Shown: piece by piece, positions 1,376 through 41,848 of the stretch | Numbering within the stretch: the stretch's first letter is position 1 | Layout of the letters: every line of letters begins with the position of its first letter | Assembly (NCBI GenBank): GCA_964187785.1 | Contig: OZ076418.1 | Coordinates: forward strand, 21,948,001-22,012,000 | Direction: 5' to 3' | Source: Amphiscolops sp. MND2022 | Lineage: Eukaryota | Length of the DNA stretch: 64,000 bases | The notes under the pieces: generated by a model | What the model was told of the DNA's origin: nothing | Databases searched by the model: none | The model's input: only the letters and a program-made list of their open reading frames with translations | Translations under genes and position numbers: made by a program

Positions 1376-2266
1376 CTGAACAAAAAACCTTTTAACGGTC
1401 AGCATTTCAGTGTTCATACCGAAACGACGCAGTACGCAGTGCGTAATATCTCCAACACGTCGAAAAGCGTTGGCTGATAATAATAAACTTGAAGGAATTT
1501 AATTTCATCACTATTGATTAAAATCAACGAAGTGAAATAAGCACTCTTTTTTCAACGTCCTAATTTGATTTACGAATTAGTAAAATATGTAGACACAAAA
1601 CTTGAGAATTTTTTGTTGACAATCATTTTGCAACAGTAATATTTGGAAGTTGGGATTTGAATCTCAATCGGAATTCACCAGACTACCATAGTAAAGAACT
1701 GGGTCGTGATGATATTCACATTCCATACTTTTGAAGACTACCTCGAGCCAACAATTTCAGAAAATTTTTCTCACGGACGTTAAATAGGAAGTTGATATCT
1801 ACGGAATAACTTTAAAAGTAGAAAAAGGTATGTTTCAAATTTACTCAACGGCAAAGTTACCAGAAGCTCTAAAGACGGAAACTGCCCAAATCTGTGCCCT
1901 GCTTAAAACTTGAGCAGCGCAAAGTCTTCAAAATAAGCTCAAAGGCTGTTTAAAAGAAATTCTAAAAAAAACTATGTCAAAAAAATTGACGTTGCTCTCG
2001 ACGAGAATCAAAAATTTGCAAAACCATTTAGAATCGAACGAAGAGTAACTTGATTTTATTCAGAATTGAAATGGTTTATACTACTTTCATTTATACTACA
2101 TATAGTGCTGTTACGTGCAGTATACCTCCTAGAGCGCCATAAAACCACAGTTCCAAAAACTTACAAAAACCTATATAAAACCACAGTTCCAAAAAACTCA
2201 AAAGGGATCGATTTTTTAATGTTTTTTTTTCGGCGCTTTTTGTAACAAAAATAAATGGTCCACGTC

Positions 2267-2455
2267 CAGAGTTGGAACCGGGCTACGCTTGAAAAAAAGG
2301 CTGGGACGGGCCTGTGTTTTGATAGGTGAAGAACAAAAAGGGTTCGAATTAAATTCATTTGTGGGTCTGTTAGTAGGAGTTTCAAAACCATTGACAGGGC
2401 CAGGTCGGGCTTGAATGTGACCGGGCCTAGATATTCAGGCCCCGTTCCAACTCTG
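2267..2455. mobile_element. hAT-like MITE
   Basis: TIR CAGAGTTGGAAC.GGGC / GCCCCGTTCCAACTCTG; degraded 8-bp TSD TCCACGTC / CCCACCTC; subterminal CGGGC repeats. Confidence 0.7.
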
Positions 2456-2529
2456 CCCACCTCATACAAGTTTTTCTGTCAGACCACAGACCTCATACTC
2501 AATGGTCCATTTTTTGAACAGATGTTCCT

Positions 2530-2597
2530 GCCAAAGTGGTCTAGTGGTTAGGATGCCCGCATCGCAAGTAGGAAGCATTGCGTTCGAAACCTTTTTT
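2530..2597 (+). ncRNA. tRNA-derived Pol III cassette (pseudo-tRNA / SINE-like head)
   Basis: A-box TGGTCTAGTGG, B-box GTTCGAAAC, followed by a T6 terminator; the cloverleaf stems are imperfect. Confidence 0.55.
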
Positions 2598-3425
2598 CAT
2601 GTTTGCAAACCTTGATGTAATCAAAGGATCCAGAGGAAAGAATTTTTAAGCCCAAAAATTTTCTGGTGCATTTTTTCATCTCTGGTCAAAACTGAGAAGC
2701 TATTGAGGATCGTGTATCTCAGGTACTAAAAACATACAGGTATTTTTCGTCAGTGATATCTATCAGAATTTTCATGAAAACAGCATTTAAGCATATTTGA
2801 AAAATTTGCACTCTTTACTCAGTGAACTCTTTACTCAAGCGTGCGAATATGAAACCAGAGAACTAGCTGGAGCGGTTAATTGAGATTCGTCACCTGAACA
2901 ACTAACTGCGTGAAACCATCAACTTGATTGAAATTGATCAACAAAGCGCTCGACAACCACAAGAACTGTAAAAGAATTCACTATTTATGGAATCCAGTGA
3001 TTCGCTCAGTGGTCAACTCAGCAGTTGGTCCCTTACTATTGAACTTTAAGAGTTCAAACTGAAAGAGGTGGAGCGAACAGCACAAGTCATATTAGTCATA
3101 TTCAAGATAAATTAGACGACAGATAAGACATTTCGAATTAGGCGACAGATAAGACATTTCGGCGTTTTAAAGTGGACGTGACTAATTTTTTTCATTTTTC
3201 ATTTTAACACTAAAATTCAAGAGCGAAAATAAGTGTTACTTCATTTCCGGTTCAACTTTAGCTGGTCAATACTGATAGAAGCGATTGCGCGTCGTTTATT
3301 CCAGGTACTAAAAGCGTGAAGCGATTGTACTTGACTTTAGAGGATCAGTAATATCTCATTTCCGTTGACACTTTCACTATTGGAAAAGCATTAATATAGA
3401 GGTGTACAGCAACTTCGGTCTTGAC

Positions 3426-6700: not shown

Positions 6701-8442
6701 GAGAATAACAGTGGAAGTAGTTAAAAATAACGGTTAATTGGTATCACATACATCATCTAAAGAAGTGATTTCGAACAAAAAACTCTTGGGATAGATCGTT
6801 CAATGAAAAACCACGCCAAATCATTGAAAACTAACTTCTGCAGATTTTCAACTTGAAGATATGACCGAAAAGGAGCAATTTTTGATGGAATTGGCACTAA
6901 TAGGTGTTTTTCTGCAGTTCAATTCGCTTTTATATTATTGTAAAAGGCATGATTTTATCCACTGGGCTCAAATATAGCTCTTATTCTTGTCTCTTCAACA
7001 TGTTAAAAATGTTTAACCGATTAGGAAATAAATAACCATTTAATCGACTCTCCTACAAAAGACAGACTATCCTACAATACGGAAAATTGCCAGTTGCAAA
7101 AGCTTCTTCGAATTTTTTTGTACTTTTCAAAGGTTCAAAATTTGACAAAAATCAAAAGTTGAAAATAAACTTTGACAAAATTTTATCAAAACTGCATTTC
7201 TCATTTCCCAAAAAAGTTTCAAAAATGAATTCATCTCGTATACATGTATTGCAGTACTCGTAGACACAAAATAGTGTACACTTCTAATTCAAAACAAATT
7301 CTAAAACCAAAAAATTCAGTAGGTTCAGATTATAAATAGTCTCCGAATGAACAAAACTTCCTAAAATTTCGATTTTCAGGAGCTGAAATTTCAAAAAAAA
7401 ATTCTAACCAAAATTTCCTAAAAATTGCAATTTGCAACAAAGAATTTTTCTAACTGAAAAACATCCAAAAAGCCAAAGGGTGGGACCCTTTTGTGAACAT
7501 TCAATTGTCAAAAAAGGTCCCGGCCTGTTATTATTGTTCATTGACGATCATCATTGACGAGACGCAAAAATGACGTTCGAAAACAAACGCAAACAAAAAT
7601 GTATTCATGAATTTTCTTATTAACCTTACAACATATGCGCTCACACTCTCTATCATAGGCAAAAAACTTCCATACTCTTGGCTTTTTTATTACATTGAAA
7701 AGAATAGGAAGAGACTGAATTTCTTGATATTTGCATTCGAGATGAGTACGAACTGAATCCTACTATTTGTATCCTGGGTTTAAACATGCACTTCATTATA
7801 GTTACTAGTTCTCGGACAATTTCCCAAGAGAACCAATTAATTAAATCCTGATGCAAGTTTAGATGGAAATTAGGCAACCAAGTTGAAATTACGAAAACAA
7901 GATCATTTTAACGGAAGGGATTTCATGGCATTCATTTCCACTTATTACATCATATCACTCCATGGTATGCTTGCTGAACTTTGTTTTGCGTCATAATAAC
8001 ATTAGAATTGAACATCTTTGTCAGGACATCAAAATGTTTCATTCAAAGCTTGTAAAATATATCAAATTAGGTTTTTACAAGAAGAATACACTATGTATTT
8101 TTGCTAACCGAATGAATTATTTTCAAGTTGAGAAAAAAAAACATTTTAAAATTCACGTTTTGAATTTTACATGCAGTTTCGATGATCAAGCCACCGAGTA
8201 TTACAGCCCATCAGAAGTTCACCCATATCCCTATAAATCTGACATTGATTCTATAATTCTAACAAAACGATGGGATCTTTTCTTCGGTAACTCGAAAAAG
8301 TTCAGTGTCAAAAAATTCGCACAATGCTCTGTTCCTGCAAAAATCAAATGGGGCACTTCGATTGAAAAATGATTAAAAAATCGCATAGTGCCAAAAAACA
8401 CAAACGGGACACTTTGCTCTCACCTCTACTTTTGCAAGCCTA

Positions 8443-9236
8443 AACAAGCCGGGAACGGCCCAAGTCGGCGCCATATCTAAGGCTCAAAAATAGCAAAAGG
8501 ACTTAAAGTGTCAACGTATTCTCTTCTAAAGCACCCAAAAACCCAAAAGTTGGACCGGATTGGCGCGCCAGGGGAACGCTTTGACATTTTCCATCCCTTC
8601 TGTCGCAAATCATCAAAAAAATTGAAGGGGGACCCTTTGGTGAAAAAAATGAAAAAATATCTCACTATTCCGAAAAAAAACTGAAAGGGGGACCTTTTGG
8701 TATTTTTCAACGTCCACTCTGCCGCAAAATTCCAGAAAAAAATGAAGGCGGAACATTTACGGATTTTTTTGTCTAAAAGAAGTAGCACTATGTCGAAATG
8801 AAAAAAAATGGGAAAAAGATTTACCGAATTATTTTTCGAAACTTTTTTGAAGTCATCGTTAAGTCGCATAGTGCCGAAAAATGTAAAAGGGGGGACCCTT
8901 TGGGATTTTTTGAACGTCCAATCTCTTGCAAAATATAAAAAAATGAAGTGAGGACCCTTTGGAGACATTGAAAAAAATTGCGAAAAAAAGTCTCAAAGCC
9001 GAAATTACATGCACAAAAAAAATGGTCAAGGGTGAGACTCGAACCCACGTCGTTCTGCTTGGCAGACATCAAAAACTATCCTAATTAACCTCTATGCTAA
9101 GTGGCAGTAGAAGTTACAAGTGCGGCAGTTAGTGGACGCAGCATATAACGCTTATGAAATCTGTCACTTCGTTGGTCTTAAAAAAGAAAAGTCACTGCTA
9201 TAGTCTGCGTTTTCTATGAAAAGCGCCGACTAAAAA
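8443..9236 (-). mobile_element. HINE-like (Helentron-associated non-autonomous) element, family 1
   Basis: Sub-TIRs AGTCGGCGC (8463) / GCGCCGACT (9223); terminal hairpin GCCG-GGAA-CGGC; T-rich termini; internal GGGGACCC repeats; tRNA-like cassette at 9023-9105. A degenerate fragment lies upstream at ~8270-8440. Confidence 0.75.
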
Positions 9237-9519
9237 TTGATTTGGTTCCGTAAACAGAAAAGGTTTAACATAGCCGATTAAAAAAATTCAATCAACTTGT
9301 GATCAAATTCATTCTCAAATTTGATTAGACAAAGACACATTCCAAAGGGTAGCCGTAATTTTGTTCGTTCACCATTATAGCCGCTTGAAATTATAACTGA
9401 ATCTACACGCATAAATGGGGGAGGAAAATCATGATCTGTGTTGCGTTTTTTCTAAATTCTGCCAAATCTCCTCCCAGTTCCACCTCACTTAGTTACTTGA
9501 CTATTTTAGTTACTGAGTA

Positions 9520-9672
9520 AAATCTAGTCACCATGGAGCAGTTAATAGTGCGCCTGCCTGGCAGACACGAGGTCGTGTGTTCAAACCCGAGCCGATGCTT
9601 TTTAAGCTGAAACACTGTTATGCTGTTACCCTTTCAGCGGAAAATATCCCGGTGCTTAGCGGGCGTCTTGTT
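9520..9672 (+). mobile_element. tRNA-headed short element ending in a hairpin + CTTGTT (family 3 end)
   Basis: TGGAGCAGTTAA...GTGTTCAAACC then a T-run. The tail GCGGAAAATATCCCGGTGCTTAGCGGGCGTCTTGTT recurs at 33308-33343 and, degenerate, at 22936-22971. Confidence 0.5.
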
Positions 9673-9871
9673 ACAATATAGTTACGAAATCGAAGCTTCG
9701 TTCTCAAGTAGTTTGGTCAATCATAATTGAGAATTCAATCTTATTCTGCTATAAAATGATTCGTCTTTAATGTCTTTAATCTCGTACGGCTATAATCCAT
9801 ACCACCATTCCAAAGATGTATGCGGGTATTTTTGTACATGTAAAACAAAATAGCGTCAATAGAAAATTGTT

Positions 9872-9961
9872 ATAACGTAGTCAGCTATGGTCACGTGTCT
9901 CTAAATCCCTAAATGCAGGAGCCGGAGCTAAGCGACGTGCCATTACTAGTCCAGCGGCTGG
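9872..9961 (-). repeat. Copy of the hairpin-rich 'CTGACTACGTTAT-ended' repeat
   Basis: Reverse complement matches GGCACGTCGCT...CTGCATTTAGGG...ATAGCTGACTACGTTAT of 43510-43647. Confidence 0.75.
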
Positions 9962-10441
9962 ATTTGACGAAGGCCAACCCGGTTATATAAAAATTATGTC
10001 TGATTTTTACCTTGTTACATTTTCGGCTAAGTGGCACCCCGCCGCTGTAATGTTTTTCAGTGGAAATTCATATCATAACTAGTTTTATAACTGCCTCAAG
10101 GGATCGGCTTTTGAATTCTATCATTGCTTTTTCGCAATGCCCAAAATTGTGTCACCTTCTTGGATACTGGAAGCAAGCCAGATAATCACGTGATACATGT
10201 ACTTCATTCAAACTTAAAAAAATGTTCCAGCACTTTCTAACTGAACATCATACAAGTGCGCTGCAGAGAACTTCGATGCTACAGGAGCTTTAATTCTTTC
10301 AAGTTGAAAACCTCATAAACGTTCAAACGAGTGCGTTCGTCTCGCTTCGCTAGCTTCCGTTTAACCTAACTTTATAAAGGCGACTGAATTCTTGCAAGGA
10401 TTTAAAGTACCCATTACGGCCAAAAGAGTAAGCATTGCTTA

Positions 10442-10614
10442 CAGTGGAATCCACCTAATTCGTATCGCTAGGGAGCGAATAAAATAGTACGAATAATGAG
10501 AAATTCGAATTATCCGGATGATATTACTTTGGTCGTCGCGAAATGGCGTCTCAGATACATACGAATTGAACGAAGATCCGAATTATCCGGATACGAATCA
10601 ACCGGAGCTGACTT
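10442..10614. mobile_element. Tc1/mariner (pogo-like) MITE, same family as 5770-5942
   Basis: Colinear similarity over its full length; TA at the left end; right terminus mutated. Confidence 0.82.
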
Positions 10615-11849
10615 TCAATTCTGGTCATACCAAATTTTCTCAGAAAAATCTTGATTCTGGCATTTTGTGACGCAAAAAATTAGATCCAATATATAAAACA
10701 TTCACGGGCAAAAAACATGAAAGGCTTCTATTTATTTGACCAATGCTAGACAGGTCACACAACACAATTGTCATAGAAGCAATTCATTGAAAATTTCTTT
10801 TCAGGCTATCGTTATGTGGCATCTCAACTCTAATATAAAATCACACATTGAACGTGGAAAAATATTTAATTTGACAAATTTTAGAAACGTTGGATCACCA
10901 AGGAGCGATACTGATCAGCGTGTAAAATATATTGTGAATTACGTACAGTGAAATTGATATAAATTGAATATGATGACAAAATATATCTATGGTTTTGTAC
11001 AATAGAATATATTAACTTTTTGTTCCAATGTATTTGTGTTTTAGACAAATATATTTTCGTATTCATTTCAAGGTTGGCAAATAACACAAACGTATGATTA
11101 TATGTATGATTATACGTGAAATACAAGAAACTCGACTCAATTTCTTGGCCAACTATTAAGCATTTGGATTTAGTTAGTGGAAAAATATTTTCACATCTAT
11201 TTACTTGTAGAAAAATTCAGCAAGTGTTATCGTCAAAGTTTGGTATCATTATCATAGATGTGAATACAATCTGAACTGATGTGAAGAAGCTTACAGATGA
11301 ACCCTTTGTTGGAACAAAATATTTTTTGTCTTACAATATAGGTCATCATTATATTTAATATATTTATTGGTCAGGAACAAAGTACATTTTTTTCGAAAAT
11401 TTATTTTTTACATCCCTGATTCTAATGCATTAGTGTTGCATTTTAGTCTACAAAATCAATTTTGTTTTGCCATTTTCAAATACTTGCAAATTTGTACCCA
11501 AAATTGAGGATAAAAGAACGAGATAACAAAACCAACAAATATTCTAAATCGATAGGCCGCCCAAACTAATACCAAATATGTATTCAATTATTGCTTTTCT
11601 TCTTATCACGCTCATTCTCGACTTCAACCAAGTCTTAATTACTATTTCTGAGCCATTCCATTGAACCAGTTCATCAGGAGACAAAGGTCAATGGAATTAG
11701 CAACCGGGCAGCAAAATAGGATCATTTACAAGTGCAGATAATGAATGTAGTACAACTGGGGTAACGTAGTTATTTCTGCTAGATACCATACTGTAATGAA
11801 GGAATTGGACCCCTGTTGGTAAAAATAATTTAGACTGAAAATAAATTCA

Positions 11850-12410
11850 CTGGAAACCCGAGTTTTGAAGGTAGTCGAAAATGCTTAATCAAATATCGTT
11901 AAATTTGTGGAAACACTTCAGAATCAGTTTTGTAAATAATTTTGTAGCTTGCTAATATCACTTCTGACTACTACTAATTCCTGATGTTGTAGCAAATTTT
12001 TCCAAATTTGCCGTACTTTAATAAAAGAATTGGGCCCCTGATTGTAAGAAATGATTTGGACTCAAATCAAACTAGCTCGAAACACGAGTTATTTGAAGGT
12101 AATCAAAAAATGCTTACACAAACATCAATCATTTTGTAAAGGCACTTCATTCATAATCAGTTTTGCAAGCAACTTTAAAGCTTGCTGATATCACTTTTGA
12201 ATACTTGTATTAACTACAGTGGATCCCGGATATAAGAAACTCGCTTATAAGAAATACACGCTTATAGTCAATGCGTATCTTGGCCCTGACTGGCAATTTC
12301 ATTCCTTTTAAAACCCGGATATAAGAAAGTTCGATTATAAGGAACCCCAATAGCGTTCCCCTGACGTTGATTATATCCGGGATCCACTGTACTAATTTCT
12401 GATCTAGGTG
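11850..12410. repeat. Degenerate ~225-bp tandem duplication, interrupted by a MITE
   Basis: GAAACCCGAGTTTTGAAGGTAGTCGAAAATGCTTA (~11853) vs GAAACACGAGTTATTTGAAGGTAATCAAAAAATGCTTA (~12079); CTTGCT.ATATCACTT occurs in both. Confidence 0.5.
12217..12389. mobile_element. Tc1/mariner (Tigger-like) MITE
   Basis: TA|CAGTGGATCCCGGATATAA...TTATATCCGGGATCCACTG|TA: perfect 19-bp TIR. Confidence 0.92.
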
Positions 12411-12439
12411 CAAGTTTTGCCAAATTTAAGTGCATCGTA

Positions 12440-13260
12440 GACCCAGTTTTGCAATTTTTTATTTTTGACAAACTATTACATCCACTAAGGACGATAATGT
12501 TTTGTTTACAGAAAAGTCATGAAAAACTATATATTTTTTCACAAATTCTATCCCCTATCTTGATACATTGCATTAAAGTTTTTTCTCTGGAATGTTCAGT
12601 TCAACATGGTTTCTTTTCAATATCTTGTAATGAAAGTTATTTGTGTGAACGCTACTTTTGTTGAAAGCATCTGAAAAATTAAAAACGATTTTTTTTCGAA
12701 TTTCAAAACGTTCCAAAATCGAATCTAACTAAGTTAGAAGCGAAACCAGTAGTAAAATGCATAGCTTCTAAGTTTTTGTATATGGATCTCATAAAAATGT
12801 TTGTAGTCAACATGAAAAACTAATAAACTTCCAGTTTCTGTTTTCGAAAATACTATTTCGTCCAAAAGATTTTGGTCTCCTTTATCCGAGTGCAATTATT
12901 TTTTACATTAAGGGGTCCAATTCATTTATTACAGTACTGTAAGCAATTTTGTATTATCGACAGAAACTACTGCATCCATTGATGCGAATAATGTTTTGTT
13001 AAAATAAAAACTGTACTGATATATGGCTTTTCTAAAAATTGACTTTTATGTACCATCTCAAAACATTGCTTCAAGTTTTTCTCTGAAATGTCCTATTATA
13101 TTAAAGAAAGTTTCTTTTTAAAATCTCACAATGGACACTCTTCAAAAACAGTTCATCTAAGAAATTTTGAACAAAAATGTTTATAATCAAGATAAAATTA
13201 AACCTTTTAGTTTGTTTTAGGAAAAAAGTATTTCGTTAAGATATTGGTCTCTCATAACCT
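12440..13260. repeat. Old degenerate direct repeat with ~490-bp period
   Basis: ACTATTACATCCACT..ATAATGTTTTGTT (~12472) vs ACTACTGCATCCATT..ATAATGTTTTGTT (~12967); TTTTTCTCTG.AATGT.C occurs twice. Confidence 0.45.
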
Positions 13261-13311
13261 CGACAGTGATTTCTTCCTAAATGAGGACAACGATTTTTTT
13301 TCGCAATCAAT

Positions 13312-13725
13312 ACCAGAGCCGCATATGCGGTAAAGGAGTCGGCTTAGGTCTTTTTCGTTCTGACTAGCCATACGAATTTGAAGAAATTACACACGAAGAA
13401 CCATAATATGGTGTAGAATGACTGTACACAATTTCGTTCGAATCGTATGGACAGTTTTTGCAAAAATTGAAAAAAGTCGAAAAATGGCTGTTTTTGGCCA
13501 TTTTTGGGTTAATTTTGGATACGTTTATCACATTCCAGTCATACGATTTTGATGCTTTTGCGCATGCAGGAGCCCCTTTTGGTGTAGAATGACTGTGCAA
13601 AATTTCATGAAAATCGTATGGACAGTTTGAGAAATTTGAAATTTTCATGAAAGGTCGGGAGAAAAAAAACAAAAAAACGACACGATTGCATAAGTAGCCG
13701 AAAATTTTTTCCGACTCCTAAAAAA
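13312..13725 (-). mobile_element. HINE-like element, family 2
   Basis: Palindrome CCGCATATGCGG (13319-13330) next to sub-TIR AGGAGTCGG; the inverse CCGACTCCT at 13711 is followed by an A-run; internal ~50-bp direct repeat GGTGTAGAATGACTGT..ATCGTATGGACAGTTT (x2). Confidence 0.65.
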
Positions 13726-15199
13726 ATTTACGAGAAGGCAAAAAGCCTACAGGAAAACAAAAATTTGTCTTTCTTATCGACAATCGATTGGCGTATCTGG
13801 GGTGAGTTATTTGTGACAATGTAGTTTTTTTCCCGAGCCACCGGCAAAAAACGTAACTGGAAAAAAGTGAAAATTTGCAAAAAAATTACTCTTCAGAAAA
13901 TTGGCTTTTGCTAACTGAGCAAATGTTTGCTAAGTTACTATCTCACTGTAGTAACACTTTAGACCACTTTTGAAAACGCATATAGAAGTTTTTCAATAAA
14001 GCTTCAGTTATGAGTTCGACGGGCATTTGAAAGGTGGCCCTAACTCCCAGTCTAGCTAGTTAGAAATAGCTTTCAGGAGCAAAACAACGATTTGAGCTGC
14101 TGCTATTATTCGTGGAGAAAAGAAGCTTTGAAAAAAATTGCCAAATTTTTGTCAATTTTCCAACTTATGCGTGTACTGTCGAGATCATTTTTTACAATCA
14201 GAGGTCCAATTCATTTACTAAAGTATGGTATCACGCTTCGATACTCTGGCGTTCTCTTTTGGCAGGGATAGGGGAGTCCCGTACGACTTCTCACGGGATT
14301 CACAGCATTCAATTAAGCGATCGTTCATTTCAGCCCAAAATTGAATTAGACAATTACGTCTGAGATGTTCCTAATTCGGCAGAGAGAATTAGGCCTTCAC
14401 TTGTTGTACCAAAGGAAGAGTCTTGAACATAATCATGACTAAGCAATGAACGTGGGGTAAATTGATATTAGACGACTATCCTATCAGTTAATGTTGAAAT
14501 TTTGTTAGTTTTTTAGTCGCAGTTTTGAGATATCAATAATTTTAACACTGTCTTCGTTTATGCAAAATTGTTCGTTATTTACAGGACATGGAGTTTATGT
14601 TGGTTGAAAATAGTATGTGCTGTTTCTACACTTGAGAGAAAATTCATCTTCATATCATTACGCCCAAGTTTTAGAGCCAAGCAAAATAGATTACCATCAA
14701 CATATTAACCTATATTGCTTCAAATTCCCCAGTCTTAATAAAAACGGAACTCAAATTCGGGAAAAAACCATTCATAAAAGCTTTTATGTTGTTTGGTACG
14801 AAATTTCCGTCTTTCGTAAAGGTGAATGATAGCTTTTAAAAAACCAATGAACTCTGCTTTTAGAATTTGAGAAAAAGGTTACAAAGAACTGATTCATGAA
14901 CTAACGAACTTGTGTTGAACGGAATATGAACATTGTTTCCAAAGGGAAACTCATTCACGTTGGTTGTATTTACAGTCTTTAATTCATTTGAACTACTACT
15001 TGCTTACTGTATCGATTCGAATGCTCTATTTTAGGGCATTGTAAAAAAGGAATAACATTTTACAGAACAACAACAGTGTTATTCACCGGAATCCATATAA
15101 ACTATAACAATCTTTCCCATTCAGTTTTGTTCGGAAAGTATCTTCTTCATTAGGCGCAGCACTTTTTGTAATCAAAAATATGCTTTTTCATCTAATTCA

Positions 15200-16047
15200 T
15201 AAGCCACCTAATTCGGAAGAAGAATGCGATGAACACGGCGGATTCAATTTTAAAAAGATTGACAGCGAAAAGAGATAGCATTACTCTGTGTCGGAGAACG
15301 GTTAATTAGAGAAATTTCCTATATTCCAGGATAATGCACAATCCTTCCTGTTCAAAGAATGAGAAAAGCCTCAGGACGATTTGGATAATTAGCATGAATG
15401 GTGAACTTGATGCAATTTTGGAGCACAGAAAAAAGCTTTTAAAAAACTGTTCGAAATTCATTCTCATACAAATGGCTTTTGATGCTCAAAATACGCGAAT
15501 ATGGTATCGTTTGTACTTAGCAAAGTGCCTGAGATTCGATATAATTAGACGGTGCACTTATTTCTTCATCTGCTTGCAAATACGAACACTTATATTAGAT
15601 GCTACCGAATGAATTAACATAGAAAAAAGCATATTTTTGCAAACAATAATCTAATTACTCGACGAAAAAACGGCGCCAAAAATTCTGAAAACAAATACTA
15701 TGTGCCTTTCTAGCCTCTTTAGCCGGGAGCAGCAGAAGTCGGTGCTTGAGGCTCAAAAATTAGCAAAGGGAACGTGGTACTATTGTATCCCGGAAAAAAC
15801 TGTTAAAAATATTTCCATTCAGCTTGGAAAAATTCGTAAGCTCAAAAAACGTATCTGCCTAGAACCTATCTCGAGACCTTCTGCGTACGAACCGAGCTCT
15901 CTAACTTCTAGCCAGACCACTATGAGCCGTCAAAACTAAAACTGTAGAATTTTATAGGTTTATTTTGATAACTTCCATTGGGTTGAAAAAAGACAACGAG
16001 TCACTATTAAAGTCGGTTCTTCATTTCAGAGAGCGCCAACGAAAAAA
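15200..16047 (-). mobile_element. Family-1 HINE 5' end + tRNA-like cassette + unrelated ~500-bp cargo
   Basis: 15985-16047 aligns to the family-1 5' end (9170-9236); tRNA-like segment at 15845-15925; body homologous to 6200-6660. Confidence 0.55.
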
Positions 16048-16420
16048 GACAAAATCCGACGAAGTACAATTATACCTAGGTTCCAGGCATGAGATGAAGT
16101 CTAATGATGATTCAATCTAATGCTATATCATGGATTCCAAAAGAATGTAGGATCATAACGGTTATTCGTATGTAATAGAACGATCATTCAAATTGAACGA
16201 CCAAAAAATAACCAGAAATTTTTCAAATATCAAAAACCAGAACTTTAAGTTCAGATCTCAGAAAAGCATCAGAAACAAAGAATCATCAGTATTCCACCAA
16301 TTCGCCACTACGAAGAGCCAGGCGAATGATTCCACTATAGGTCAAACGCATGCAACCCTTGCCAAACTAGAGACTTTCTCGACCAAAACACGAACAACAA
16401 ATAGTTGAACTCAAACTAAC

Positions 16421-16623
16421 CGTATCAACTTGGTGGCAATGGCTACAGGCAGGATGGAGTACAAAAGATCGTCTGCTCGTTTCTTCTCCAGCACCACGTG
16501 TTTAGCCTTTTCCTCCACCAGAGATTCCATGGTTTTGGCGTACTTGTCCATTCTCTGCAGCATGTTCTCCATGATGTTGTCCGGCACGTTCTCCTTCAAA
16601 CAAGCAACTAACGTCTTACATGG
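16421..16623 (-). CDS. Receptor guanylyl cyclase exon 6 (signalling helix / coiled-coil hinge)
   Basis: NIMENMLQRMDKYAKTMESLVEEK...EKKRADDLLYSILP; CAACAG|CCA and CG|GTTAGT junctions. Confidence 0.92.
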
Positions 16624-17183
16624 CTGTTGGAAAGCATCGGGAAAATATGCCACTTTGAACCCTAGTTTCCTTGCGAATGATGAACTTTCTGAATAATCTG
16701 ACTTATTTTGCCATCGAATAGTCCCAACAGTTTACCACAGAAGTTCCAGGCTGCATTAACACTTACATTCTATTTCATTTTTGAAATAAAAATGGACAAG
16801 GTCTACACAAACGGAAGAATCTCAGACAATGTTAAAGAAACAAAGTGATGAAAAAATCAGAAGATATTACTGTGCAGAAAATATTACTGGGCCTTCTAAG
16901 TGGATTCCACTAAATGCAATTCATTTTAGGAAAATACAAATTTGTGTCATCCAATATTTGGCAGAGTAATGAAAATGAATTAGGAATCAGTATAAAAATA
17001 CAATGAAAGGTGGCACACTTTTGAATCAATGAGAAGTATTATAAGTTAGTCGTGTATGTGAGAGACATCTGCCTAGGATCCCGTCTAGAAAGGGTTTAGG
17101 GTCTAGATTCGTTCGGTTTGGATGTCACTGGGGAATTGCCCCTTCCCCGAGGGGTTAGACAAGAACTTATTCAGAAAAAGTAC

Positions 17184-17371
17184 CTTCAACTTGCTGCAGA
17201 CCCAGTTCATGTCAGGGCGGTCGTGGGGGTTCTCAGCCCAGCACAGCTCGATCACGTGCCGTGCATTTCTCAGTCTGGATCTCATGGTCTCCACCACGCC
17301 CTTCTCGTAAGTCTCCAGCTCCTCGGTGAAGTCGCTGTCATCGAACATGGGCCGGAAGGGATTCTTGCCAC
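17184..17371 (-). CDS. Receptor guanylyl cyclase exon 5 (end of kinase-homology domain)
   Basis: GGKNPFRP...IELCWAENPHDRPDM. The phase-1 junction continues EVIKG from exon 4 across a ~16.5-kb intron; CGCAG|GT and AAG|GTAC junctions. Confidence 0.9.
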
Positions 17372-17411
17372 CTGCGAACAAACATGATACCAGTGATTAT
17401 ATAGCAGACAG

Positions 17412-17840
17412 CAGTGATGTACATTTTAACCATTTGTTTACCATTGGTTTAACAAATTGGTTTGTTAAACGTTTTTAACCATTAACCAACCTGTTAAACA
17501 GATTCGGTTAAAAAACCCAATTTTCAACCAATTTTGAAAATAAAAATTTTGTCATTTCTGTGTTCAAAACTCAAAGTCCCAAACACAGAATTCAGAAATG
17601 ATTTAGGAGTTCAAGTAAGGTCAGGCAGTTATGCCTAGTTTCCGCACATTTTCTGAACTCCCAACTACTCATTCGATTGTGTTTTCAAGAACTTTTGAGG
17701 AAATGGCCATAAAAATACCCCTTAAAATGTGCCGCAAAAAGTTGGTTAAATTCAGATTCATGGCGAAAATTGGTTCAACAGATTCGGTTTTTCAATAGGT
17801 TATTGTTAAAAAACGTGTTAAAAAATTTAACACATCACTG
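17412..17840. mobile_element. hAT-like MITE
   Basis: TIR CAGTGATGT / ACATCACTG. TATAGCAG occurs on both sides but is offset by 4 nt on the left. Internal AACCA/TTGGTT repeats. Confidence 0.65.
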
Positions 17841-18299
17841 TATAGCAGCGGCGATAAATCAGGTAACGATCAGTTCAAGACATTAGAGGATGACTAAAAC
17901 AATGGATCAAAATTTTTGCCATCATACTGTTTCTTTATGGTTCGGAGGATTCAAACCAAGCATCATTATGGGTGATGGTTGAAACGATGCTTTTTTTGAT
18001 TGCTTCTAAAATGTTAGAAATTGATTGAAAATTTTAGTTTTGAAAAGAGAGTTTCGAGGTTTTCTCCACCCCTGTCGATTTCGCTAAATGATTAAGCCCT
18101 GCATAGTTTGACAACATTGTTTGCGAATTGCACAAGATCCAAGCATATCCTTTTGTAGTCGTCAAAATGATGCCAAATTAAATTTCGATAACTTGAAAAA
18201 CGCCCACGTCCATCGGAGTCAGTATCCACTTGCCAGTATTAGATGGTTCTCGAAGGTCTAAAAATAAGATTGATAGACACGTCTCTTATTGTGGTATGC

Positions 18300-18597
18300 G
18301 GAAAACTCTTCGAAAACAACTCGCCGAATGCAACTCGCCGAAAACAACTCGTCGAAAATAAAGGGCGGAAAACTGGTCGAATATTAACTCGTCGAATAAT
18401 AACTGAGTGCAAACTCGTCTAATAATTACAGATTACAAACAAGGATTATTCAGTGTTTTCATCACAAAGTTAGCGCTATTTTTGTCTGAGATTATTTTCT
18501 GTCCTTGCGACGAGTTTTCCGCCGGAGCATTTTCGACGAGTTTTCCGTCTAGTATTTTCGACGTTGTTTTCGGCGAGTTGTTTTCGAAGAGTTTTCC
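18300..18597. mobile_element. MITE with TIRs made of short tandem sub-repeats
   Basis: GGAAAACTCTTCGAAAACAACTCGCCGAA / TTCGGCGAGTTGTTTTCGAAGAGTTTTCC; repeated AACTCGYCGAA units. Confidence 0.8.
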
Positions 18598-18964
18598 TAG
18601 ATTCTCTAATTATTCATGATCGAAATGAGCAAAACTAAGTAGGATCAAATAGTCCCTTGGTCATCTATAATCCAAAGTGAAAATGGCCTTAAAAAGAACA
18701 TCACACATTTAGAGCCCTTAATACAGAGGCCAAATAGACAAAAGACAAGCCACTAGAAGACGGGATTCGACGGCCGACCTGAAAGGGTGCATAGCGCCCC
18801 GAATAGAGGCTGAGTCATGCAACCAATTTACAAACGCAGTTCATAGTAAAGTTATCATTTGCGTTCCTGTACAATTAGATTGTAAATGATTACTGTAAAT
18901 CATTTGGTTGCAATTTTCGATTCCTAAAATTGATCATGTCATTGATTCACAGTTCCTTTTTTCC

Positions 18965-19615
18965 TTTTTAGTCGGCGGTTTTCACCTGTAAAAAGTGCTC
19001 GACTCTCACACTGGCAAGTTTTTTGTCAGGGTCTCTGAAGCGTCCAGAGACTTTAATAAAATTTATTTATTAATAATTTTAAATTTTAATAAATTTTATT
19101 ATATGGCCGGTTGGCCTAGCGGTTAACGCATATTTTCAGACCTTGTGACGGTCTGAGAAGCAAGAGTACGTGTGTTCGTGTCCTTGACTGAACCAAAGCT
19201 TTTAATGCTAGCGAAGACGAAAGATCAAAGGGTCCCCAATTTTTTTATGTCTCCAATGCGACTTTTCTATTTTTTTTTAACGAAGCTCCCTTCAATTTTT
19301 ATCAAAAATGAAGCGTTGTGCGAGAATAGAGGGCACCTCAAGCACGGTACTTTTTCGAGAATTTTTTTCATTTCGTCGAAGAGTATCCCCTTCACTCTGA
19401 GAAATTTTCAAGAAGAAATTTTTCAAAAATTGGATTTTTTAATGTTTCCATTTAGGGAAGAAGCGGTTTTCGATTCTTATGGGTATTCCTCCTTCAGGTA
19501 TCTTTTTTTGGCACTGTAAAATCCATTTAAAAATTCACAAGAGTCCTTTAGCGTATTTATAACTTTTTGCTCTGTTTGAACTTGAGCGGGGCGCCTACTA
19601 GGGCCGTTCCCAGGT
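18965..19615 (+). mobile_element. Family-1 HINE-like element (diverged) with tRNA-like cassette at 19105-19200
   Basis: 5' TTTTTAGTCGGCG aligns to the reverse complement of 20160-20236; 3' TTGAGC...GGCGCC.ACT.GGGCCGTTCCC.GGTT is a degenerate family end. Confidence 0.65.
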
Positions 19616-19678
19616 TCCTTCCTTTCTTTACTTCTGCCACAGCATTTTATATTTAATATTTTCTCCCATGTATAACCT

Positions 19679-20236
19679 AACAAGCCGAGAACGGCCAAAG
19701 TCGGCGCTATATCTAAGGCTCAAAATTGTAAAAGGGGGGACTCTTTGGGTTTTGTGAAACTCCAGCTGGTGGCAAAATATGAAAAAAATTGAAGGGGGGA
19801 CCCTTTAAGGACTTTAAAAAATTGCACAAAAAAATTTTAAAATGTGATTTTTGAACAGTGTCACAGTGCCGAAAAATGTAAAAGGGGGACCCTTTGGAAT
19901 TTTCTGACATCCATTGTGTTTTAAAATATTGAAACAAATAAAGGGGGGACCCTTTGGTGCAATCCAAAAAGTTTCAAAAAAAGTCGCATAGTGCCGAAAA
20001 AAAGTGAGGGGGGAGGCTTAGGGGGAGATCGTTAGTGTGTTGTCGAGGTTCTGTTTGTTTTGTTTTCTTTTTCGTTTTGGACGCGCTTCTTAGGTTCGCC
20101 AAGTTGTTGAAGAAATGAACTGAACAAAGAACAAAAAGAAAAGACACAGAAAGAAAAGTGGAACTTTCGTGTCTAAAAAAAACTACCCACTGTAATAGTC
20201 GGGCACATTTTCTACTAAAATGCGCCGACTAAAAAC
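19679..20236 (-). mobile_element. Family-1 HINE-like element
   Basis: AACAA-GCCGAGAACGGC-CAA-AGTCGGCGC ... GCGCCGACT-AAAAA; near-identical layout to 28815-29364. Confidence 0.8.
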
Positions 20237-20299
20237 ACGTTTTGCCGACTTTGGTGTCAATATCGGAAAATCGTCAGCATTTCGTTTTCAGCAAAACGT

Positions 20300-28394: not shown

Positions 28395-30622
28395 CAAACA
28401 AGACGGGAACGTCCCAAGTCGGCGCCATAACTAAGGCTCAAAAATATTCAATGAACAACTATTGGAAACATTTGGGAAAAAATTTTCAAAAAAAAGTATT
28501 TTTAAAAGTCGCACAATGCCAAAAAACTCAAAAGAGGCCATTCAGGCTCATTCAACGTTTTTACAAACCGAAAGCTTCAAAAAAATGCAAGGGGTACCTT
28601 TTTATAGAATTCGAAAATTTTCGAAAAAAAGTAGCATAGTGCCGAAAAAAACCCAAAGTGGAGACCCTTTGGTCTCGCCTCTACTTTTGGAAGCATAAAA
28701 AAATTTGTGGCTTAGTGCAAGAATCGAACCCGCGATCTCCTGCTTCTCAGAAAATCAGTTGAACAAAGGATTGTAAAAAAAGACCATTCAGAGTGAGACT
28801 GTCAGCTGAAAAAGAAACAAGCCGAGAACGGCCAAAGTTGGCGCCATATCTAAGGCTCAAAATTTGAAAGGGGGACCCTTCGGGCTTTGTGAAACTCCAG
28901 CTGGTTGCAAAAAATTTAAAAAATTGAAGGGGGGACCCTTTGGAGACATGAAAAAATTTCCCAAAAAATATTTTTAAATGAGATTTTTGAACAGTGTCAC
29001 AGTGCCGAAAACTGTAAAAGGGGGACCCTTTGCGATTTTTTGACATCCATTGTGTTGCAAAATATCGAAACAAATGAAGGGGGGACCCTCTGGTGCAATC
29101 CAAAAAACTTCAAAAAAAGTCGCATAGTGCCGAAAAAAGTGGGGCTGAGGTGGGATCTTCAGTGTGTTTTCGAGGTTGTGGACGTCTGTCTTGTTTTTTC
29201 TTGTGTTTTGGACGCGCTTCTGAGGTTGGAGTTGTTGAGGTTTGAAGTTGTTGAGGTTTGAGGTTGTTGAACAAATGAACAAAAAAGTGGACTTTTCGTG
29301 TCTAAAAAAAACTACCCACTGTAATAGTCGGGCACATTTTCTACTAAAATGCGCCAACTAAAAATACTACCCACTGTAATAGTCGGGCTTTTTTCCTTAA
29401 GGGAAAAGGCGCCGACTAAAAACAAGACGGGAACGTCTCAAAAAGCGCAAAGTCTTTAAAATATGCCCAGGACGTATTTACCGTATTTACGAAAAGCTCA
29501 GAAAACAGTTTCGAGACACCCAAAGGGTGCCTTACATGCTTGATAAGACTCGGAAACCACTTTTTCACCAACTGGGAACAAGAAAAAAGTTTTTTAAAAG
29601 AAACATCAGATTTTTTCTTTTAGAAATTGTCGCATAGTGCCAAAAAATGTAAAAGGGGGAACCCTTTGGGATTTATTAACATACATTCTGTTGCAAAATA
29701 TCAAAAAACTCAAAGGGACTATTTGCAGACATTTAAAAATTTTCGAAAAAAAGTCGCACAGTGCCGAAAATGGCCGTTTAGTCTCGTCTGTTTTTGTAGG
29801 GTACGTTAAAAAAGTAAAAAAGAAAGGCGGGACCCTTTGCACCATGTTTCCGCTGGCCAGACTTGGCTTTGTTAGTTTCTGTAAAAAGTGGACCGATCAG
29901 TGTGAGGTCTGTGGTCTGGAGAAAAAAGGGTCACTGTAAGTGTCGGGCATTTTTCCTTTCAAGGAAAACGCGCCGACTAAAAACAGTGACTGCAATGACT
30001 CTCTAAAAACGCCGACTAAAAATAGTCACAACTATAGTCGGGTCTTTCTTACAAGAAGCGCTGATTAAAAATGATCTTTTAGTGGTCGCTTCATGAAGTG
30101 AAACGCGATTATTATAATGACTTTTTTTTCCAATCCACACGAACTGACCAAAATAGTTCTTAAAAGTTCTACGAAATTTTATGGTCCCAAATTGAATCAT
30201 TTGGCCTAGCGAACTGAACCAATAAGGTTTTTCCTCTTTTTCCGCGTAACATACCATACCGGAAGAGACTAAAGGGTCCCCCTTTTAATTTTTTGGCAGT
30301 CTTTTTTTCGAAATTTTTTCTCCAAAGGGTCCCCTTTCAATTTTTTGATGTTTTGCGACAGAATGGATGTTGAAAATCCCAAAGGGTCCCCTTTCAGTTT
30401 TTTCGGCATTGTGAGACTTTTTTTGGAATTTTTTTCACCATTCAATTTTTTTGATTTTTTGCAACAATGGATGTTAAAAAATGCGCAAGCTCCGTCGTTT
30501 GGGTTTTTCGTGAGTTTGATACTTTTTGTTAGTTTGACTTTGAGTTTTTCACACTTTCATGTCCTTTTGCTATTTTTGAGCCTTAGATATGGCGCCGACT
30601 TATGCCGTTCCCGGCTTGTTTC
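28395..30622. mobile_element. Cluster of at least four family-1 HINE-like elements (28395-~28760 -, 28815-29423 -, 29421-29984 -, 30074-30622 +) plus extra 5' ends
   Basis: Repeated hairpin + sub-TIR starts at 28397, 28815 and 29421; GCGCCRACT-AAAA ends at 29351, 29409, 29970 and 30009; plus-strand end GGCGCCGACTTATGCCGTTCCCGGCTTGTT at 30591-30620. Confidence 0.8.
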
Positions 30623-31555
30623 TCGTTACCATGATACCAAGAAGCATATTTGATTCGTCCAAATGATTGCACAATCAAGAAGGGATATGAATAGGAAGAT
30701 TTTTCTACCAATTGGAAAAAAACAGTGGCATGTTTTGGAACAATAGATACTGTTCAAGAAACCTTTCTAAACAAAATTGAGCCACGTAAGCTTTCTGCAA
30801 CACAAGAGTGCTTTTCGAAGTATTCCTTTTTGCATGCAAATTTAAATAAATTACTAGAATCGAAGCTAAGTTAGTAATTCTCCGCTTTAAAATGATTCGT
30901 ATTTTACATGCTGCAGGCCTGCATGCAGAGAAATTTACAAAATGCAGGGTAAATTTTGTAGAATTACAATGCAGTTTCGACTATTGAAATCGAAAATATT
31001 TCCGTCTTCATTACCGACACGATCAAGTTGTTTTCACGCTTTGATTTCTCAATTACTCATTCAATATAATCACCGCTTCTCAAATAGCACGTTGAATATG
31101 ACGCTAGGCGTTGTTTGCATTGTGAATATCATATCGCATTAAAATGGCGATGAAATGATAACGTCTTTCGATGTATTTAAAGATAGAACTGCTTCTTAGT
31201 GAAACCGGCAAACTTCAAGCCTTAAATTGCCGCCAAATTTAAGATGCCTTTCAAGCAGCTTGATAAAAGTCGAACAGAACAGGGAAATATTTTTGCATGA
31301 AAGTTTCCGTAAGAGTTTTAGAAAAGTTGGTGGCATTAAGCAAAACGTTCAAGCAACTTCAACAAGGATATGGAACTATTTCGAGAATGTTTTTTCCATG
31401 TTTAAAAGACATCAGTGGTTTTAACCCTGCGCAGTATCCATAATTTCGTTACCATGACACCAAGCGAAACGATATCTATTATCATGTTTTGTAGAGAAAA
31501 ATTCTTTAGGGCTAATCAAACGGCACCAAGATTTGTTCCGATGACAATTTCAAGC

Positions 31556-35721: not shown

Positions 35722-36035
35722 CTTCAACGAAATTACTTTTTTCTAAATAAGGAGCAAAAATAGAATAGTAAAAAAAGAAAGCTTGTTTTTCAAGAACAAG
35801 AAAAATGATTTTTTATCTTATATATTTCAAATTTCAACTTATATAGAGTTAATTAAACATGAACAATGGGGTTTCACAAAAAAAGGATTTCTAGGTTTCA
35901 TAAATTAGACTCAAACTTGTTCGTCTTAATTACATTGAATATTCAAGACAAGAACGATTCATAAACTTCCTTTTCATTTCTTTTTTAGTTTCAGGAGGAG
36001 AAAGAGGTCCATGAATGACAGTATTAAAGCCTTAC

Positions 36036-37749
36036 CTGCCTATCCCGAGATGTGATTGTCCGGCACTACCTGCCAAATTAGCAGCACTCCCAACTGAGCT
36101 TTTGTGCGAAGCATGGATGGCTGAAGATACAGCTGAAATTTTCTTCATATTTGAGTTTTTCTGATACAGAAAAGTATTAGAATGATGCTTCAATTGTGAC
36201 TCTGGAGAAGCAACGGATGGTTTCCATTCGCTGAAGTCTAATTCATCGTGTTTGATCTTCCAGATCATTTTCATCAGTTCTTCTTCTAGTTTCACCTTGC
36301 GATAAACGAAGAAACCCAAAACCATGATCACTATCACGAACAAGCAACATGCCAGCGAGGAAAAGGTTATGATGTATTTCAGCCTGTCCGGTTCTCTACA
36401 TTTTTCGTTTTCGTAACCACAATCTGGAGGCGTTTTGGGCACCTGCCCTGATATCCATGGAACCCCGGGAGCAAATGTTTCGTTGGTTCCATTTAGTTTG
36501 TAAGTAACATGCACTGAGAAATTACCCGATTCCGTATCCCACATTCTCCACACGTTCATTAGTGTGACCCGTTTGCCATAGTTGTCATACGTACTGGAAG
36601 AATAGGACAGTTTGTCTTCCGCAAACGTTTTATCTGCTATAAACTGTCTGAAGTCCCCCATGTGAATAGGCAACTTCTCGTCTCCAGTCCGAAGCCAAGT
36701 GCTTCTGGTTTCAATCGAGAAATTCATAGCCTGCATGAACAACCTGAGACCGTCGGAAGTAGCAGCCGGGAACTGGAGATGCTCGGCTAAAGGTGGCAAC
36801 TCGCAGCCAGAAAAGTCACTTTGCTCACATGCTTTGCTGTATTCTGCTCTTACAGTTTCCAATTTCTCTGCTCCACTAATCACCGGTTGCATGCGAAAGT
36901 AAAGAACGTGGCGGAAGAAATGTTTCAGGATTTGATTCTTTTCATGGTTCAAAGGAAGTGTGACGTCACGCCATGGTTGGATCCAGTCTGAGCCTGCCAG
37001 TGGGTGGTAGTTATCGAGACAGAGGATCACGTACTCTTCAATGGGCAATTTTAGATCATGGAAAAGTTTCCACATCATGTCACGGAAATGAATAGCTTCC
37101 ATGGAAACGACTATGACACGAGTCCACGACTGAAACGAAGTCGTTGTATTGTCAAACTTCTTCAGAACGTGGGCGCCGTTTGGCAATGCTTCAGTGAATA
37201 GCTCCACCTTACTTTGATCTAAACCACCACTTCTGCGCGTTAAAAAATTGTATCCGCTAGAGAACGCCAGAATGATGGTCCGGTAGAAATTATCCGGCCG
37301 TGTTGACAAGTAGATGAGAGCGAAATTGGGATCCCAGTCGAAATGCATCAACGTCTGATTAATGGCGTACGCAAAATCAGGAAGTTTGCCATTGCTACCA
37401 TGTTTATCGTACAAGAATTGCGGCATCAAAGATACGTAGCCTTTGGGATTTATATTGCCCCCGTACGCAACACCTACTGTTGTCATTGGCAAGTCATAGT
37501 TTTCGCACACTTTGTAAGTCCAACTCAATAGCGTGGGACACATTGGCCCAAAGAGTCCCTGGATACTGAAGTCGAAGTACATTCTAGCTGCTGACATGCT
37601 GTGTTTGTTGAAGTCACAATCTGTGTCGAGGTAGACCAGTTTGAAGAAATGATTGGGAAGATATATAGGCTGCCATTTCTTTATCGTCATTTCCAGGGAC
37701 ACCAGGGTCGCGTTTAGATTCAGACCAGCAATTGAGAAATCACGAAAAC
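36036..37749 (-). CDS. Receptor guanylyl cyclase exon 2: ANF-receptor-type extracellular domain, TM helix and juxtamembrane region
   Basis: Acceptor TTGCAG|G, donor AG|GTAAG. Motifs YLDTDC..GLFGPMC..LPMTTVG and PKTPPDCGYENEKC precede TM YIITFSSLACCLFVIVIMVLGFFVY, then YRKVKLEEELMKMIWKI. Confidence 0.92.
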
Positions 37750-41690: not shown

Positions 41691-41848
41691 TGCGTTCTAG
41701 TACCCAGCAACGCCACTCACACATGAAGTTTCTTTATCTGATAGCAACTATCTTCACTCCTTACATATAGACTTTTCGTTAATTCTAGCAAAGTTAATAT
41801 ATTTTTAGATGATGACTGATGAAGATCAATGATTGCAAAGCTTTTCAA

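Follow-up and report, generated by a model that had tools for sequence, protein, structure and literature searches.

A tRNA-like module at a fixed place in the left flank of non-autonomous Helentrons of Amphiscolops

Short rolling-circle transposons in the window

The window, a 64,000-nt stretch of the Amphiscolops genome, carries host repeats that are short, protein-less rolling-circle transposons, namely non-autonomous Helentrons (HINEs), several families of which occur in this genome. Each HINE comprises a T-run, the subterminal repeat TAGTCGGCGC and that repeat's own hairpin, internal repeats of ~150 bp, and a 3' repeat with a palindrome. The complement of TAGTCGGCGC lies 5–15 nt downstream and its reverse complement near the 3' end, as in the subterminal inverted repeats of HINEs. 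In both the A-type copies and the elements of the window, an imperfect palindrome (GGGCCG..CGGCTT), equivalent to the HINE stem-loop, comes after the 3' repeat. The elements measure 340–800 bp, have no coding capacity and contain central units of ~125–150 bp, again as in HINEs. Seven aligned A-type copies start with T4–T6, end with TTGTT(T) and have unrelated flanks. We assign these repeats to the HINEs because the subterminal repeat and the inverted repeat complementary to it, the T-runs, the ~150-bp repeats and the 3' palindrome match the published anatomy (PMC4067079, PMC7492417), which bears out the rolling-circle, Helentron-like nature that the original prediction had given them. They also resemble HINE/DINE-1-like elements in that the left flank leads into a variable stretch, the central repeats are in tandem, and copies occur in tandem or nested; no target duplication was seen.

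Helitron_like_N has 152 matches genome-wide, many of them within open frames of 1,300–2,600 aa, so Rep-helicase genes are present in the genome. On contig C1, none of the Helitron_like_N places lies within 10 kb of a place with flank and B box, among the first ~100 places of each kind. Head-to-tail joints from 9236 to 8443 were found in 32–39 contigs per run in the four sequencing runs found to contain the stretch, all of them DNA and none RNA.

Element A (8443..9236, minus strand) is complete and belongs to a young, abundant HINE family; it consists of left flank, cassette, ~150-bp repeats and right flank. Its ends are sharp in the seven-copy alignment, and at 8442/8443 and 9236 contig depth changes in steps and the loose ends are diverse. 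Its flank plus cassette has 40 genome matches at 92–96% identity, out of 4,233 first-look candidates. Between 18965 and 20238 two elements face each other: C1 (18965..~19625, plus strand), a HINE with its 3' repeat and palindrome near 19590–19625, whose family is older and numbers roughly 150 copies, and C2 (19679..20238, minus strand), read directly as a HINE with a microsatellite-like stretch in the cassette's place. A reading of this interval as a single element with long terminal inverted repeats was rejected because the A-family alignment fixed the true 3' end; the element ends proposed originally were in part mis-assigned. C2 is homologous (85% identity over 229 nt) to element G (28816..29366, minus strand), which also lacks a cassette and which, read directly, is inserted into the T-run in the left flank of element H (28397..28810, minus strand, with its 5' hairpin at 29367–29423).

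A tRNA-like unit built into the left flank

Several HINE subfamilies have a tRNA-like unit of ~90 nt, with an A box, a B box and a T-run, built into the left flank in sense orientation, 118–140 nt from the element 5' end, and its place and orientation are constant across aligned copies. The cassette of element A (9107->9015, minus strand) begins 129 nt inside the element, whose 5' end is at 9236, and has its A box at 9099–9089, the B box GGTTCGAGTCT at 9045–9035 and a T8 run at 9022–9015; it matches the cassette profile at E=5e-18. An antisense reading of this cassette was rejected once the A-family alignment had set the true 3' end. The cassette of C1 (19105..19203, plus strand; profile match E=3e-26) lies 140 nt from the element start, with an A box at 19112–19122; in this copy the B box (19172–19183) carries two changes and the T-run (19200–19203) is only T4.

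The remaining sites in the window are more worn. Element R2530 (2222..2700, plus strand) has a diverged terminus at ~2222 and a TIR-bounded MITE at 2267–2456 within its left flank; with the MITE removed, as the original prediction had proposed, a shorter unit at 2530–2597 with a tRNA-Glu-like D arm, the B box GCGTTCGAAACC and a T6 run stands 118 nt from the terminus. Element H keeps only the B-box half and a T7 run at 28751–28686 on the minus strand (profile positions 50–112, E=2e-9), in agreement with the partial cassette anticipated near 28700–28756. Element F (29425..29985, minus strand), with an R2530-type left flank, has a remnant at ~29868–29835 in which an A-box-like piece is joined to the post-cassette motif, and in element E (30075..30628, plus strand) a remnant at 30198–30225 consists of the A-box piece and the 3' tail, ~70 nt having gone with the B box included. 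Element B (15714..16047, minus strand) is an old, short HINE-like copy whose claimed cassette at 15925–15845 is degenerate: a cassette-profile search with filters off gave no match there, and alignments with the 13 genome relatives of its left flank cover the flank only, so that the cassette is not demonstrably common to them. The fixed position claimed for five sites in the window accordingly stands at four, one of them the half unit in H, and is weak at 15925–15845(-).

One alternative is that a free tRNA-derived SINE inserted into HINEs on independent occasions. The genome abounds in tRNA-like units (117,979 first-look candidates), a possible free unit lies at 9513–9635, and the HINE unit resembles tRNA-derived SINEs in its degenerate tRNA-like head, which has A and B boxes. 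Unlike those SINEs, however, it is internal, 118–140 nt from the element end, is followed immediately by a terminator, has no LINE-type tail, and sits in a host with rolling-circle hallmarks. Dozens of copies share an identical register and orientation, cassette and flanks diverge in step, and no aligned copy has target-site duplications or an A-tail of its own around the unit. Of 30 pattern-picked C-type cassettes, chosen by the cassette alone, about 24 are preceded, in register, by the left flank. We therefore regard independent SINE insertion as very improbable. Duplications of the cassette's own at variable positions, the outcome that had been named in advance as pointing to it, are absent from the aligned copies; nothing indicates retroposition either, and the proposed SINE/Helentron hybrid is not upheld in its mechanistic sense.

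Promoter boxes, tRNA resemblance and descent of the module

The unit has the layout of a type-2 Pol III promoter, a class in which A and B boxes stand 30–90 nt apart with a T-run terminator downstream. In the A type, both boxes agree at 10 of 11 positions, lie ~51 nt apart and are followed by a T7–8 run 17 nt past the B box; the C-type consensus has a B box of 11/11. The consensus modules of the A, D and C types keep a near-canonical type-2 promoter. With boxes ~50–70 nt apart and a T-run 17–20 nt past the B box, they would be candidate TFIIIC sites, and fresh copies could bind TFIIIC and give a ~90-nt RNA; any Pol III activity of the module is put forward here on such sequence features. Recurrence of the cassette is not due to chance, since 25-mers from the C-type and A-type cassettes have 146 and 1,333 genome occurrences, and the terminus followed after 135–186 nt by GGTTCGA occurs 3,730 times, with 0 occurrences of the reversed control in each case.

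The boxes and arm-like stretches suggest that the module derives from a tRNA. ARAGORN found 0 tRNA genes in the window; the Rfam tRNA model gave no match to the cassettes at the gathering threshold, none at E<=10 in three window copies (A, B and C1) and none at E<=5 in 20 further copies; and a cloverleaf is absent from the predicted folds of the four window cassettes. These results would fit a merely coincidental resemblance to tRNA promoter boxes within unrelated flank sequence. Against coincidence, a single unit combines an A box of 10/11, a B box of 10–11/11, tRNA-like spacing, D-loop and T-loop motifs and a terminator, this box unit recurs in several diverged subfamilies, and relaxed ARAGORN settings give tRNA-like folds in some copies, with inconsistent isotypes (Ser, Gly, Ala). 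We consider coincidence most unlikely. A genome-wide search with RF00005 returned tRNA-Lys-type arrays only, leaving no Ser or Glu genes to compare as donors.

The two main cassette types, A and C, are clear homologues: their alignment scores 77, shuffled sequences 16.5 +/- 2.8. This homology indicates that the module was inherited within the elements and did not come from repeated SINE insertions. We infer that the A and C types go back to one acquisition. The interior of the R2530 cassette is not significantly similar to either, whereas the sequence after it matches the C type at a score reached by one of 500 shuffles, so more than one acquisition is possible on sequence grounds. The left-flank variable region might, in that case, have taken up tRNA-like sequence repeatedly, Glu-like in R2530 and from another source in A and C. 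Consistent with this, the interior of R2530 is unlike A and C next to sequence common to them; its D-arm 25-mer has 20 genome matches, of which the 19 at other sites, with two to three mismatches, are candidate tRNA-Glu genes; and a neighbouring repeat family shows presence or absence of another tRNA-like unit. In a five-way alignment the cassettes nevertheless have in common the core of the D loop, AAGCA ahead of the B box, and the T-run with the motif that follows it, features that also fit divergence from one ancestor, and we think repeated uptake quite unlikely.

When the A and C consensuses are compared, the terminus window is best kept (1.00) and the B-box window comes next (0.87, with a 15-nt identical block), the remaining windows ranging from 0.0 to 0.87 and mostly from 0.6 to 0.73. 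The B-box conservation, seen in this single consensus pair, could mean constraint in source copies. Individual copies decay neutrally, at the rate of the flank: in the pattern-picked C-type copies, the unselected B-box half has ~0.7 identity to the consensus, compared with 0.73 for the left flank. This profile was taken from the pattern-picked set, a BLAST-picked set having been dropped because it was biased towards the cassette. Decay of the boxes at the neutral rate, which the original prediction had listed against itself, is thus seen in part, namely in the B-box half of this older family.

Loss variants, spread and comparison with known systems

Exact HINE termini number 36,483 genome-wide, and the 3,730 with the B-box core at the set distance make up about 10% of them; absence of the cassette from most copies, likewise named as a contrary outcome, is partly borne out, with ~90% of termini lacking a B box at that distance. 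The commonest form is a B-box-deleted derivative like element E, whose deletion-junction 25-mer occurs 10,355 times (control, 1), and some subfamilies, represented in the window by C2 and G, have no module. Because the B-box-deleted form is the commonest, module-less subfamilies exist and copies decay at the flank rate, the module is dispensable for HINE spread, and the tRNA-like piece looks like inherited cargo, the commonest family having lost half of it and spread nonetheless.

We think it rather probable that the module is a decayed tRNA-derived segment carried as inherited cargo in the left flank of one HINE clade. The segment would have joined the left-flank variable region in the ancestor of that clade and would have been copied along with the HINE since then. 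The HINEs themselves would move as DNA through Helentron Rep-helicase enzymes encoded elsewhere, with the module outside the transposition machinery, and subfamilies with the B box deleted or the module absent would have amplified at least equally well.

A competing reading is that the module works as a Pol III/TFIIIC unit under selection in source copies, for example through open chromatin or a small RNA. The abundant A, D and C subfamilies have consensus sequences in which near-canonical boxes and a terminator persist, only the terminus is a better-kept block than the B box between the A and C consensus, and at least 3,730 copies have the exact B-box core at the set distance. The abundance of the B-box-deleted derivative, the existence of cassette-less subfamilies and the decay of copies at the flank rate all argue against selection, and among the four window copies, folding of the predicted RNA is unremarkable in three (z = +0.47, -0.16 and -0.84) and stands out only modestly in C1 (z = -2.2). 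We hold this reading to be rather unlikely. It is unlikely, too, that a tRNA-derived Pol III/TFIIIC unit has been domesticated by HINEs to their own advantage, for example for chromatin-opening, for anti-silencing or as a small-RNA source; if it had, potential Pol III or insulator sites would have been scattered by the thousand over an animal genome, and the elements would be a DNA-transposon counterpart of SINEs and of the TRIMp3 discussed below.

Published HINEs have a microsatellite and a variable segment after the left flank (Thomas et al. 2014, PMC4067079; Pacific oyster Cg_HINE, PMC7492417). Unlike these, several Amphiscolops subfamilies carry a tRNA-derived A/B-box unit with a terminator in the variable segment; tRNA is mentioned 0 times in PMC4067079 and PMC7492417, and no precedent for a tRNA-derived module in Helentrons or HINEs was found in the literature on Helitrons, Helentrons or HINEs with tRNA or Pol III. 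Reported Helitron and Helentron captures are protein domains in autonomous elements (HELIANO survey, PMC11417382). Captured gene fragments, like the HINE module, are foreign sequence stably kept at a fixed place in all family copies, but the module would be a relic of a small-RNA gene in non-autonomous elements.

The closest analogues, as analogues only, are the TRIMp3, non-autonomous LTR retrotransposons that comprise Cassandra (5S), Helenus (tRNA-like) and Ajax (5S) (Kojima 2024, PMC10886601) and for which insertion of a SINE or small-RNA gene into the element has been proposed as the origin (PMC10886601). Both are non-SINE, non-autonomous families with a piece that stems from a small-RNA gene, in which promoter boxes are kept and the parental fold is lost. 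The HINEs differ in having no LTRs, primer-binding site or polypurine tract and in ending in inverted sequences. TRIMp3 require an RNA copy, which makes their use of a Pol III promoter obvious, whereas a rolling-circle DNA element does not, and the predicted transcript of the HINE module would end after ~90 nt, well short of the element end.

The known carriers of Pol III promoter relics (SINEs, Cassandra, Helenus and Ajax) all move through RNA, where the use of the promoter is obvious. We found no prior description of a DNA-moving rolling-circle family with such a relic in a fixed place and in thousands of copies, nor a published model for the combination, in keeping with the original prediction that none was established. 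The finding is a descriptive addition to Helentron biology; a new mechanism is not evidenced. Intact, B-box-deleted and module-less sister subfamilies coexist in one genome as a natural experiment, which raises directly the question of whether a Pol III/TFIIIC site alters transposon success, silencing or chromatin; as regards spread, the present evidence leans towards no effect.

Beside element A, a possible free tRNA-like unit lies at 9513–9635, and contig joints from 9512 to 9636 mark the presence or absence of a tRNA-like unit in the neighbouring repeat family.

Helentron-like anatomy of the window repeats

In this 1.07-Gb animal genome, the HINE-like repeats of the window share a plan that begins at the 5′ end with a T run and a subterminal repeat, TAGTCGGCGC, whose complement lies a few bases downstream, making a hairpin possible at each 5′ end. 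A left flank of ~100–140 nt precedes an interior of tandem units of ~125–150 bp each, and the right flank carries the subterminal repeat in reverse complement, then a short imperfect palindrome and TTGTT. Because this layout is the one described for HINEs (PMC4067079, PMC7492417), which accompany Helentron rolling-circle transposons as non-autonomous partners, we classify these elements, by structure, as HINEs.

A seven-copy alignment, which set the true 3′ end of the young family, shifted the element boundaries of the original prediction. Element A now spans 8443–9236(−), and H, G, F and E occupy one stretch at 28397–30628. The interval 18965–20238, previously taken as a single element, is replaced by two facing elements, C1 (18965–~19625, +) and C2 (19679–20238, −). 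G (28816–29366) is inserted exactly in the T run behind the 5′ hairpin of H (region 28397–29423), a natural example of T-rich target preference.

DNA contigs from four public runs, placed on 7900–9700, gave family A sharp edges at 8442/8443 and 9236; depths over this interval are summed contig depths and were not taken as copy numbers. Contigs that join element A head to tail (9236→8443) numbered 32–39 per run, in agreement with the tandem arrangement usual for rolling-circle elements. Element A matches in the genome-wide list also form arrays with a period of ~1.6–1.9 kb; joints and arrays represent tandem copies, or possibly circles. Helitron_like_N matched at 152 places genome-wide, many of them inside open frames of 1,300–2,600 aa, so candidate Helentron drivers exist.

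A tRNA-like cassette in the left flank

The original prediction placed a tRNA-like Pol III cassette (A box, B box and T run) at a fixed place in these elements, which holds for A, C1 and the unit at 2530–2597, all at 118–140 nt, and for H by half, B being a weak site. The element A cassette is ~90 nt long, begins 129 nt from the 5′ end, and has an A box matching at 10 of 11 positions, a B box (GGTTCGAGTCT) ~51 nt further on and a T8 12 nt past the B-box end. That of C1 begins at 140 nt; its B box has two changes in the window copy, the family consensus being GGTTCGAGTCC with a T6. The unit at 2530–2597, in the element R2530 (~2222–2700, +), is shorter; its D arm resembles that of tRNA-Glu, its B box is good and it has a T6. 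With an inverted-repeat-bounded MITE at 2267–2456 set aside, its distance from a diverged terminus is 118 nt. This MITE in a HINE left flank (~190 bp, terminal inverted repeats CCAGAGTTGGAAC...) is a candidate hAT-type element. Element H keeps the B-box half of the cassette alone. The unit of element B (15925–15845) is degenerate and was missed by the cassette profile, including with filters off; the B left flank has 13 genome relatives, whose alignment is limited to the flank.

Neither ARAGORN nor Rfam found a tRNA in the window. The Rfam tRNA model had no match at E ≤ 10 in three window cassettes (A, B and C1) or at E ≤ 5 in 20 further copies, and no cloverleaf appeared in the predicted folds of four of four window cassettes. 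ARAGORN with relaxed thresholds called a few copies, with inconsistent isotypes. The cassettes are not tRNAs and, since they fail tRNA detection, we infer their derivation from tRNA, on the basis of the two boxes, the box spacing, the terminator and stretches resembling D and T loops. Coincidental box resemblance strikes us as very improbable.

Genome-wide, a C-type 25-mer occurs 146 times and an A-type 25-mer 1,333 times, with no occurrence of either reversed control. Among 4,233 first-look candidates, 40 copies of the A-type flank plus cassette stood at 92–96% identity. When the C-type cassette alone was used to pick 30 loci, ~24 of them had the left flank in register upstream, the terminus lying 85–145 nt ahead of the core. 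Exact matches to the terminus TTTTAGTCGGCGC number 36,483 (control, 21), and GGTTCGA follows 135–186 nt later in 3,730 of these (control, 0); the matched strings with GGTTCGA include at least three abundant left-flank types. The cassette is a family feature, but in a minority of termini only, and the anticipated objection that most copies lack it is partly borne out, as ~10% of termini have GGTTCGA at the expected distance.

In C2 and G, a microsatellite-like stretch takes the cassette's place. In E and its relatives, an A-box piece is joined to the cassette 3′ tail by a clean loss of ~70 nt, B box included, and this junction occurs 10,355 times in the genome (control, 1), more than all intact forms combined. 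Element F holds a similar remnant, of R2530 type. Mosaic copies were also seen, such as one that combines one hairpin type with the cassette of another. In a further HINE cassette (L090:1030–1133), a near-perfect 104-nt palindrome is inserted directly behind the A box; its Rfam match to plant miRNA precursors (E = 7e-8, below gathering) is surely an artefact caused by a MITE hairpin.

Origin and maintenance of the cassette

Alignment shows clear homology between the A and C cassettes (score 77; shuffles 16.5 ± 2.8), and the left flanks of the two types have diverged together with them, which rules out repeated SINE insertion for both. No copy had an A-tail or flanking duplications at the unit. 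The independent insertions raised in the original prediction as an alternative are thus contradicted for these types, and free SINE insertion has very little probability as an explanation of the module. The post-cassette sequence of R2530 matches that of the C type (a score that 1 of 500 shuffles reached), but its cassette interior showed no significant similarity to A or C in alignments compared with shuffles. Its D-arm 25-mer has 19 other genome sites at 2–3 mismatches, which may be true tRNA-Glu genes. Given the dissimilar interior and these near matches, the R2530 unit may stem from a second acquisition, or a swap; as an account of the module in general, repeated uptake from different tRNAs is improbable.

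A different repeat family adjoins element A at 9414–9672(+), with a tRNA-like unit and T run at 9513–9635. Many contigs skip exactly this unit (joints 9512/9514→9636/9637), so only part of the copies carry it. A relative's unit, at L062:2600–2672, reaches the Rfam tRNA gathering score (30.2 bits). The unit at 9513–9635 may be SINE-like and free-standing, and could have supplied modules such as those of the HINEs. Large arrays of tRNA-Lys(TTT)-type genes, nearly identical to one another, lie on three contigs of the genome (C7:5.23–5.34 Mb, C8:47.9 Mb and C1504) and include members whose mutated anticodons read as Arg, Asn, Glu, Thr or stop.

We lean towards the module being inherited cargo in the HINE left flank, the part of which that holds it is known to turn over (PMC7492417). 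The module would be copied as cargo within this turnover-prone part, and fresh A-, D- and C-type copies, which look Pol III-competent in silico, would yield an RNA of ~90 nt, terminating far short of the element's end. Such an RNA is not needed for rolling-circle transposition, and the elements can spread without the module.

In a pattern-picked C-type set, unbiased except at the 25-mer used for picking, conservation of the B-box half (~0.7) is close to that of the left flank (0.73), so individual copies decay neutrally. This decay of the boxes at the neutral rate, foreseen as damaging to a functional reading and found here among C-type copies, speaks against the dispersed copies having a role at the level of the host. 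When the A and C consensus sequences are compared, the terminus agrees at 15/15 positions and the B-box window at 0.87, with a 15-nt identical block; other windows are mostly at 0.6–0.73, some much lower. This single consensus pair hints at constraint in source copies, as would be expected were the module selected for the element's benefit, but the success of the lineage with a deleted B box weighs more heavily, and we regard such selection as unlikely.

Module-bearing HINEs are analogous to Cassandra, Helenus and Ajax (PMC10886601), although those three are LTR elements. The window HINEs lack the defining features of both that group and SINEs, and hence belong to neither. A literature search that covered few subscription journals and no Repbase turned up no Helitron, Helentron or HINE described as carrying a tRNA-derived or Pol III unit; this negative does not prove that there is none.

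Other features of the window

A perfect inverted repeat of 137 nt with an 88-nt spacer lies at 5147–5283/5372–5508. The interval 41848–45128 and the 46–49 kb region contain a tandem duplication of ~1.9 kb (96–100% identity) and hairpin-rich repeats with one common terminal module. A 556-aa open frame at 36032–37702(−) has a weak ANF_receptor match, slightly below the Pfam cut-off, and an LTR-retrotransposon pol open frame at 59776–61788(−) includes RT, RNase H and an integrase zinc domain.
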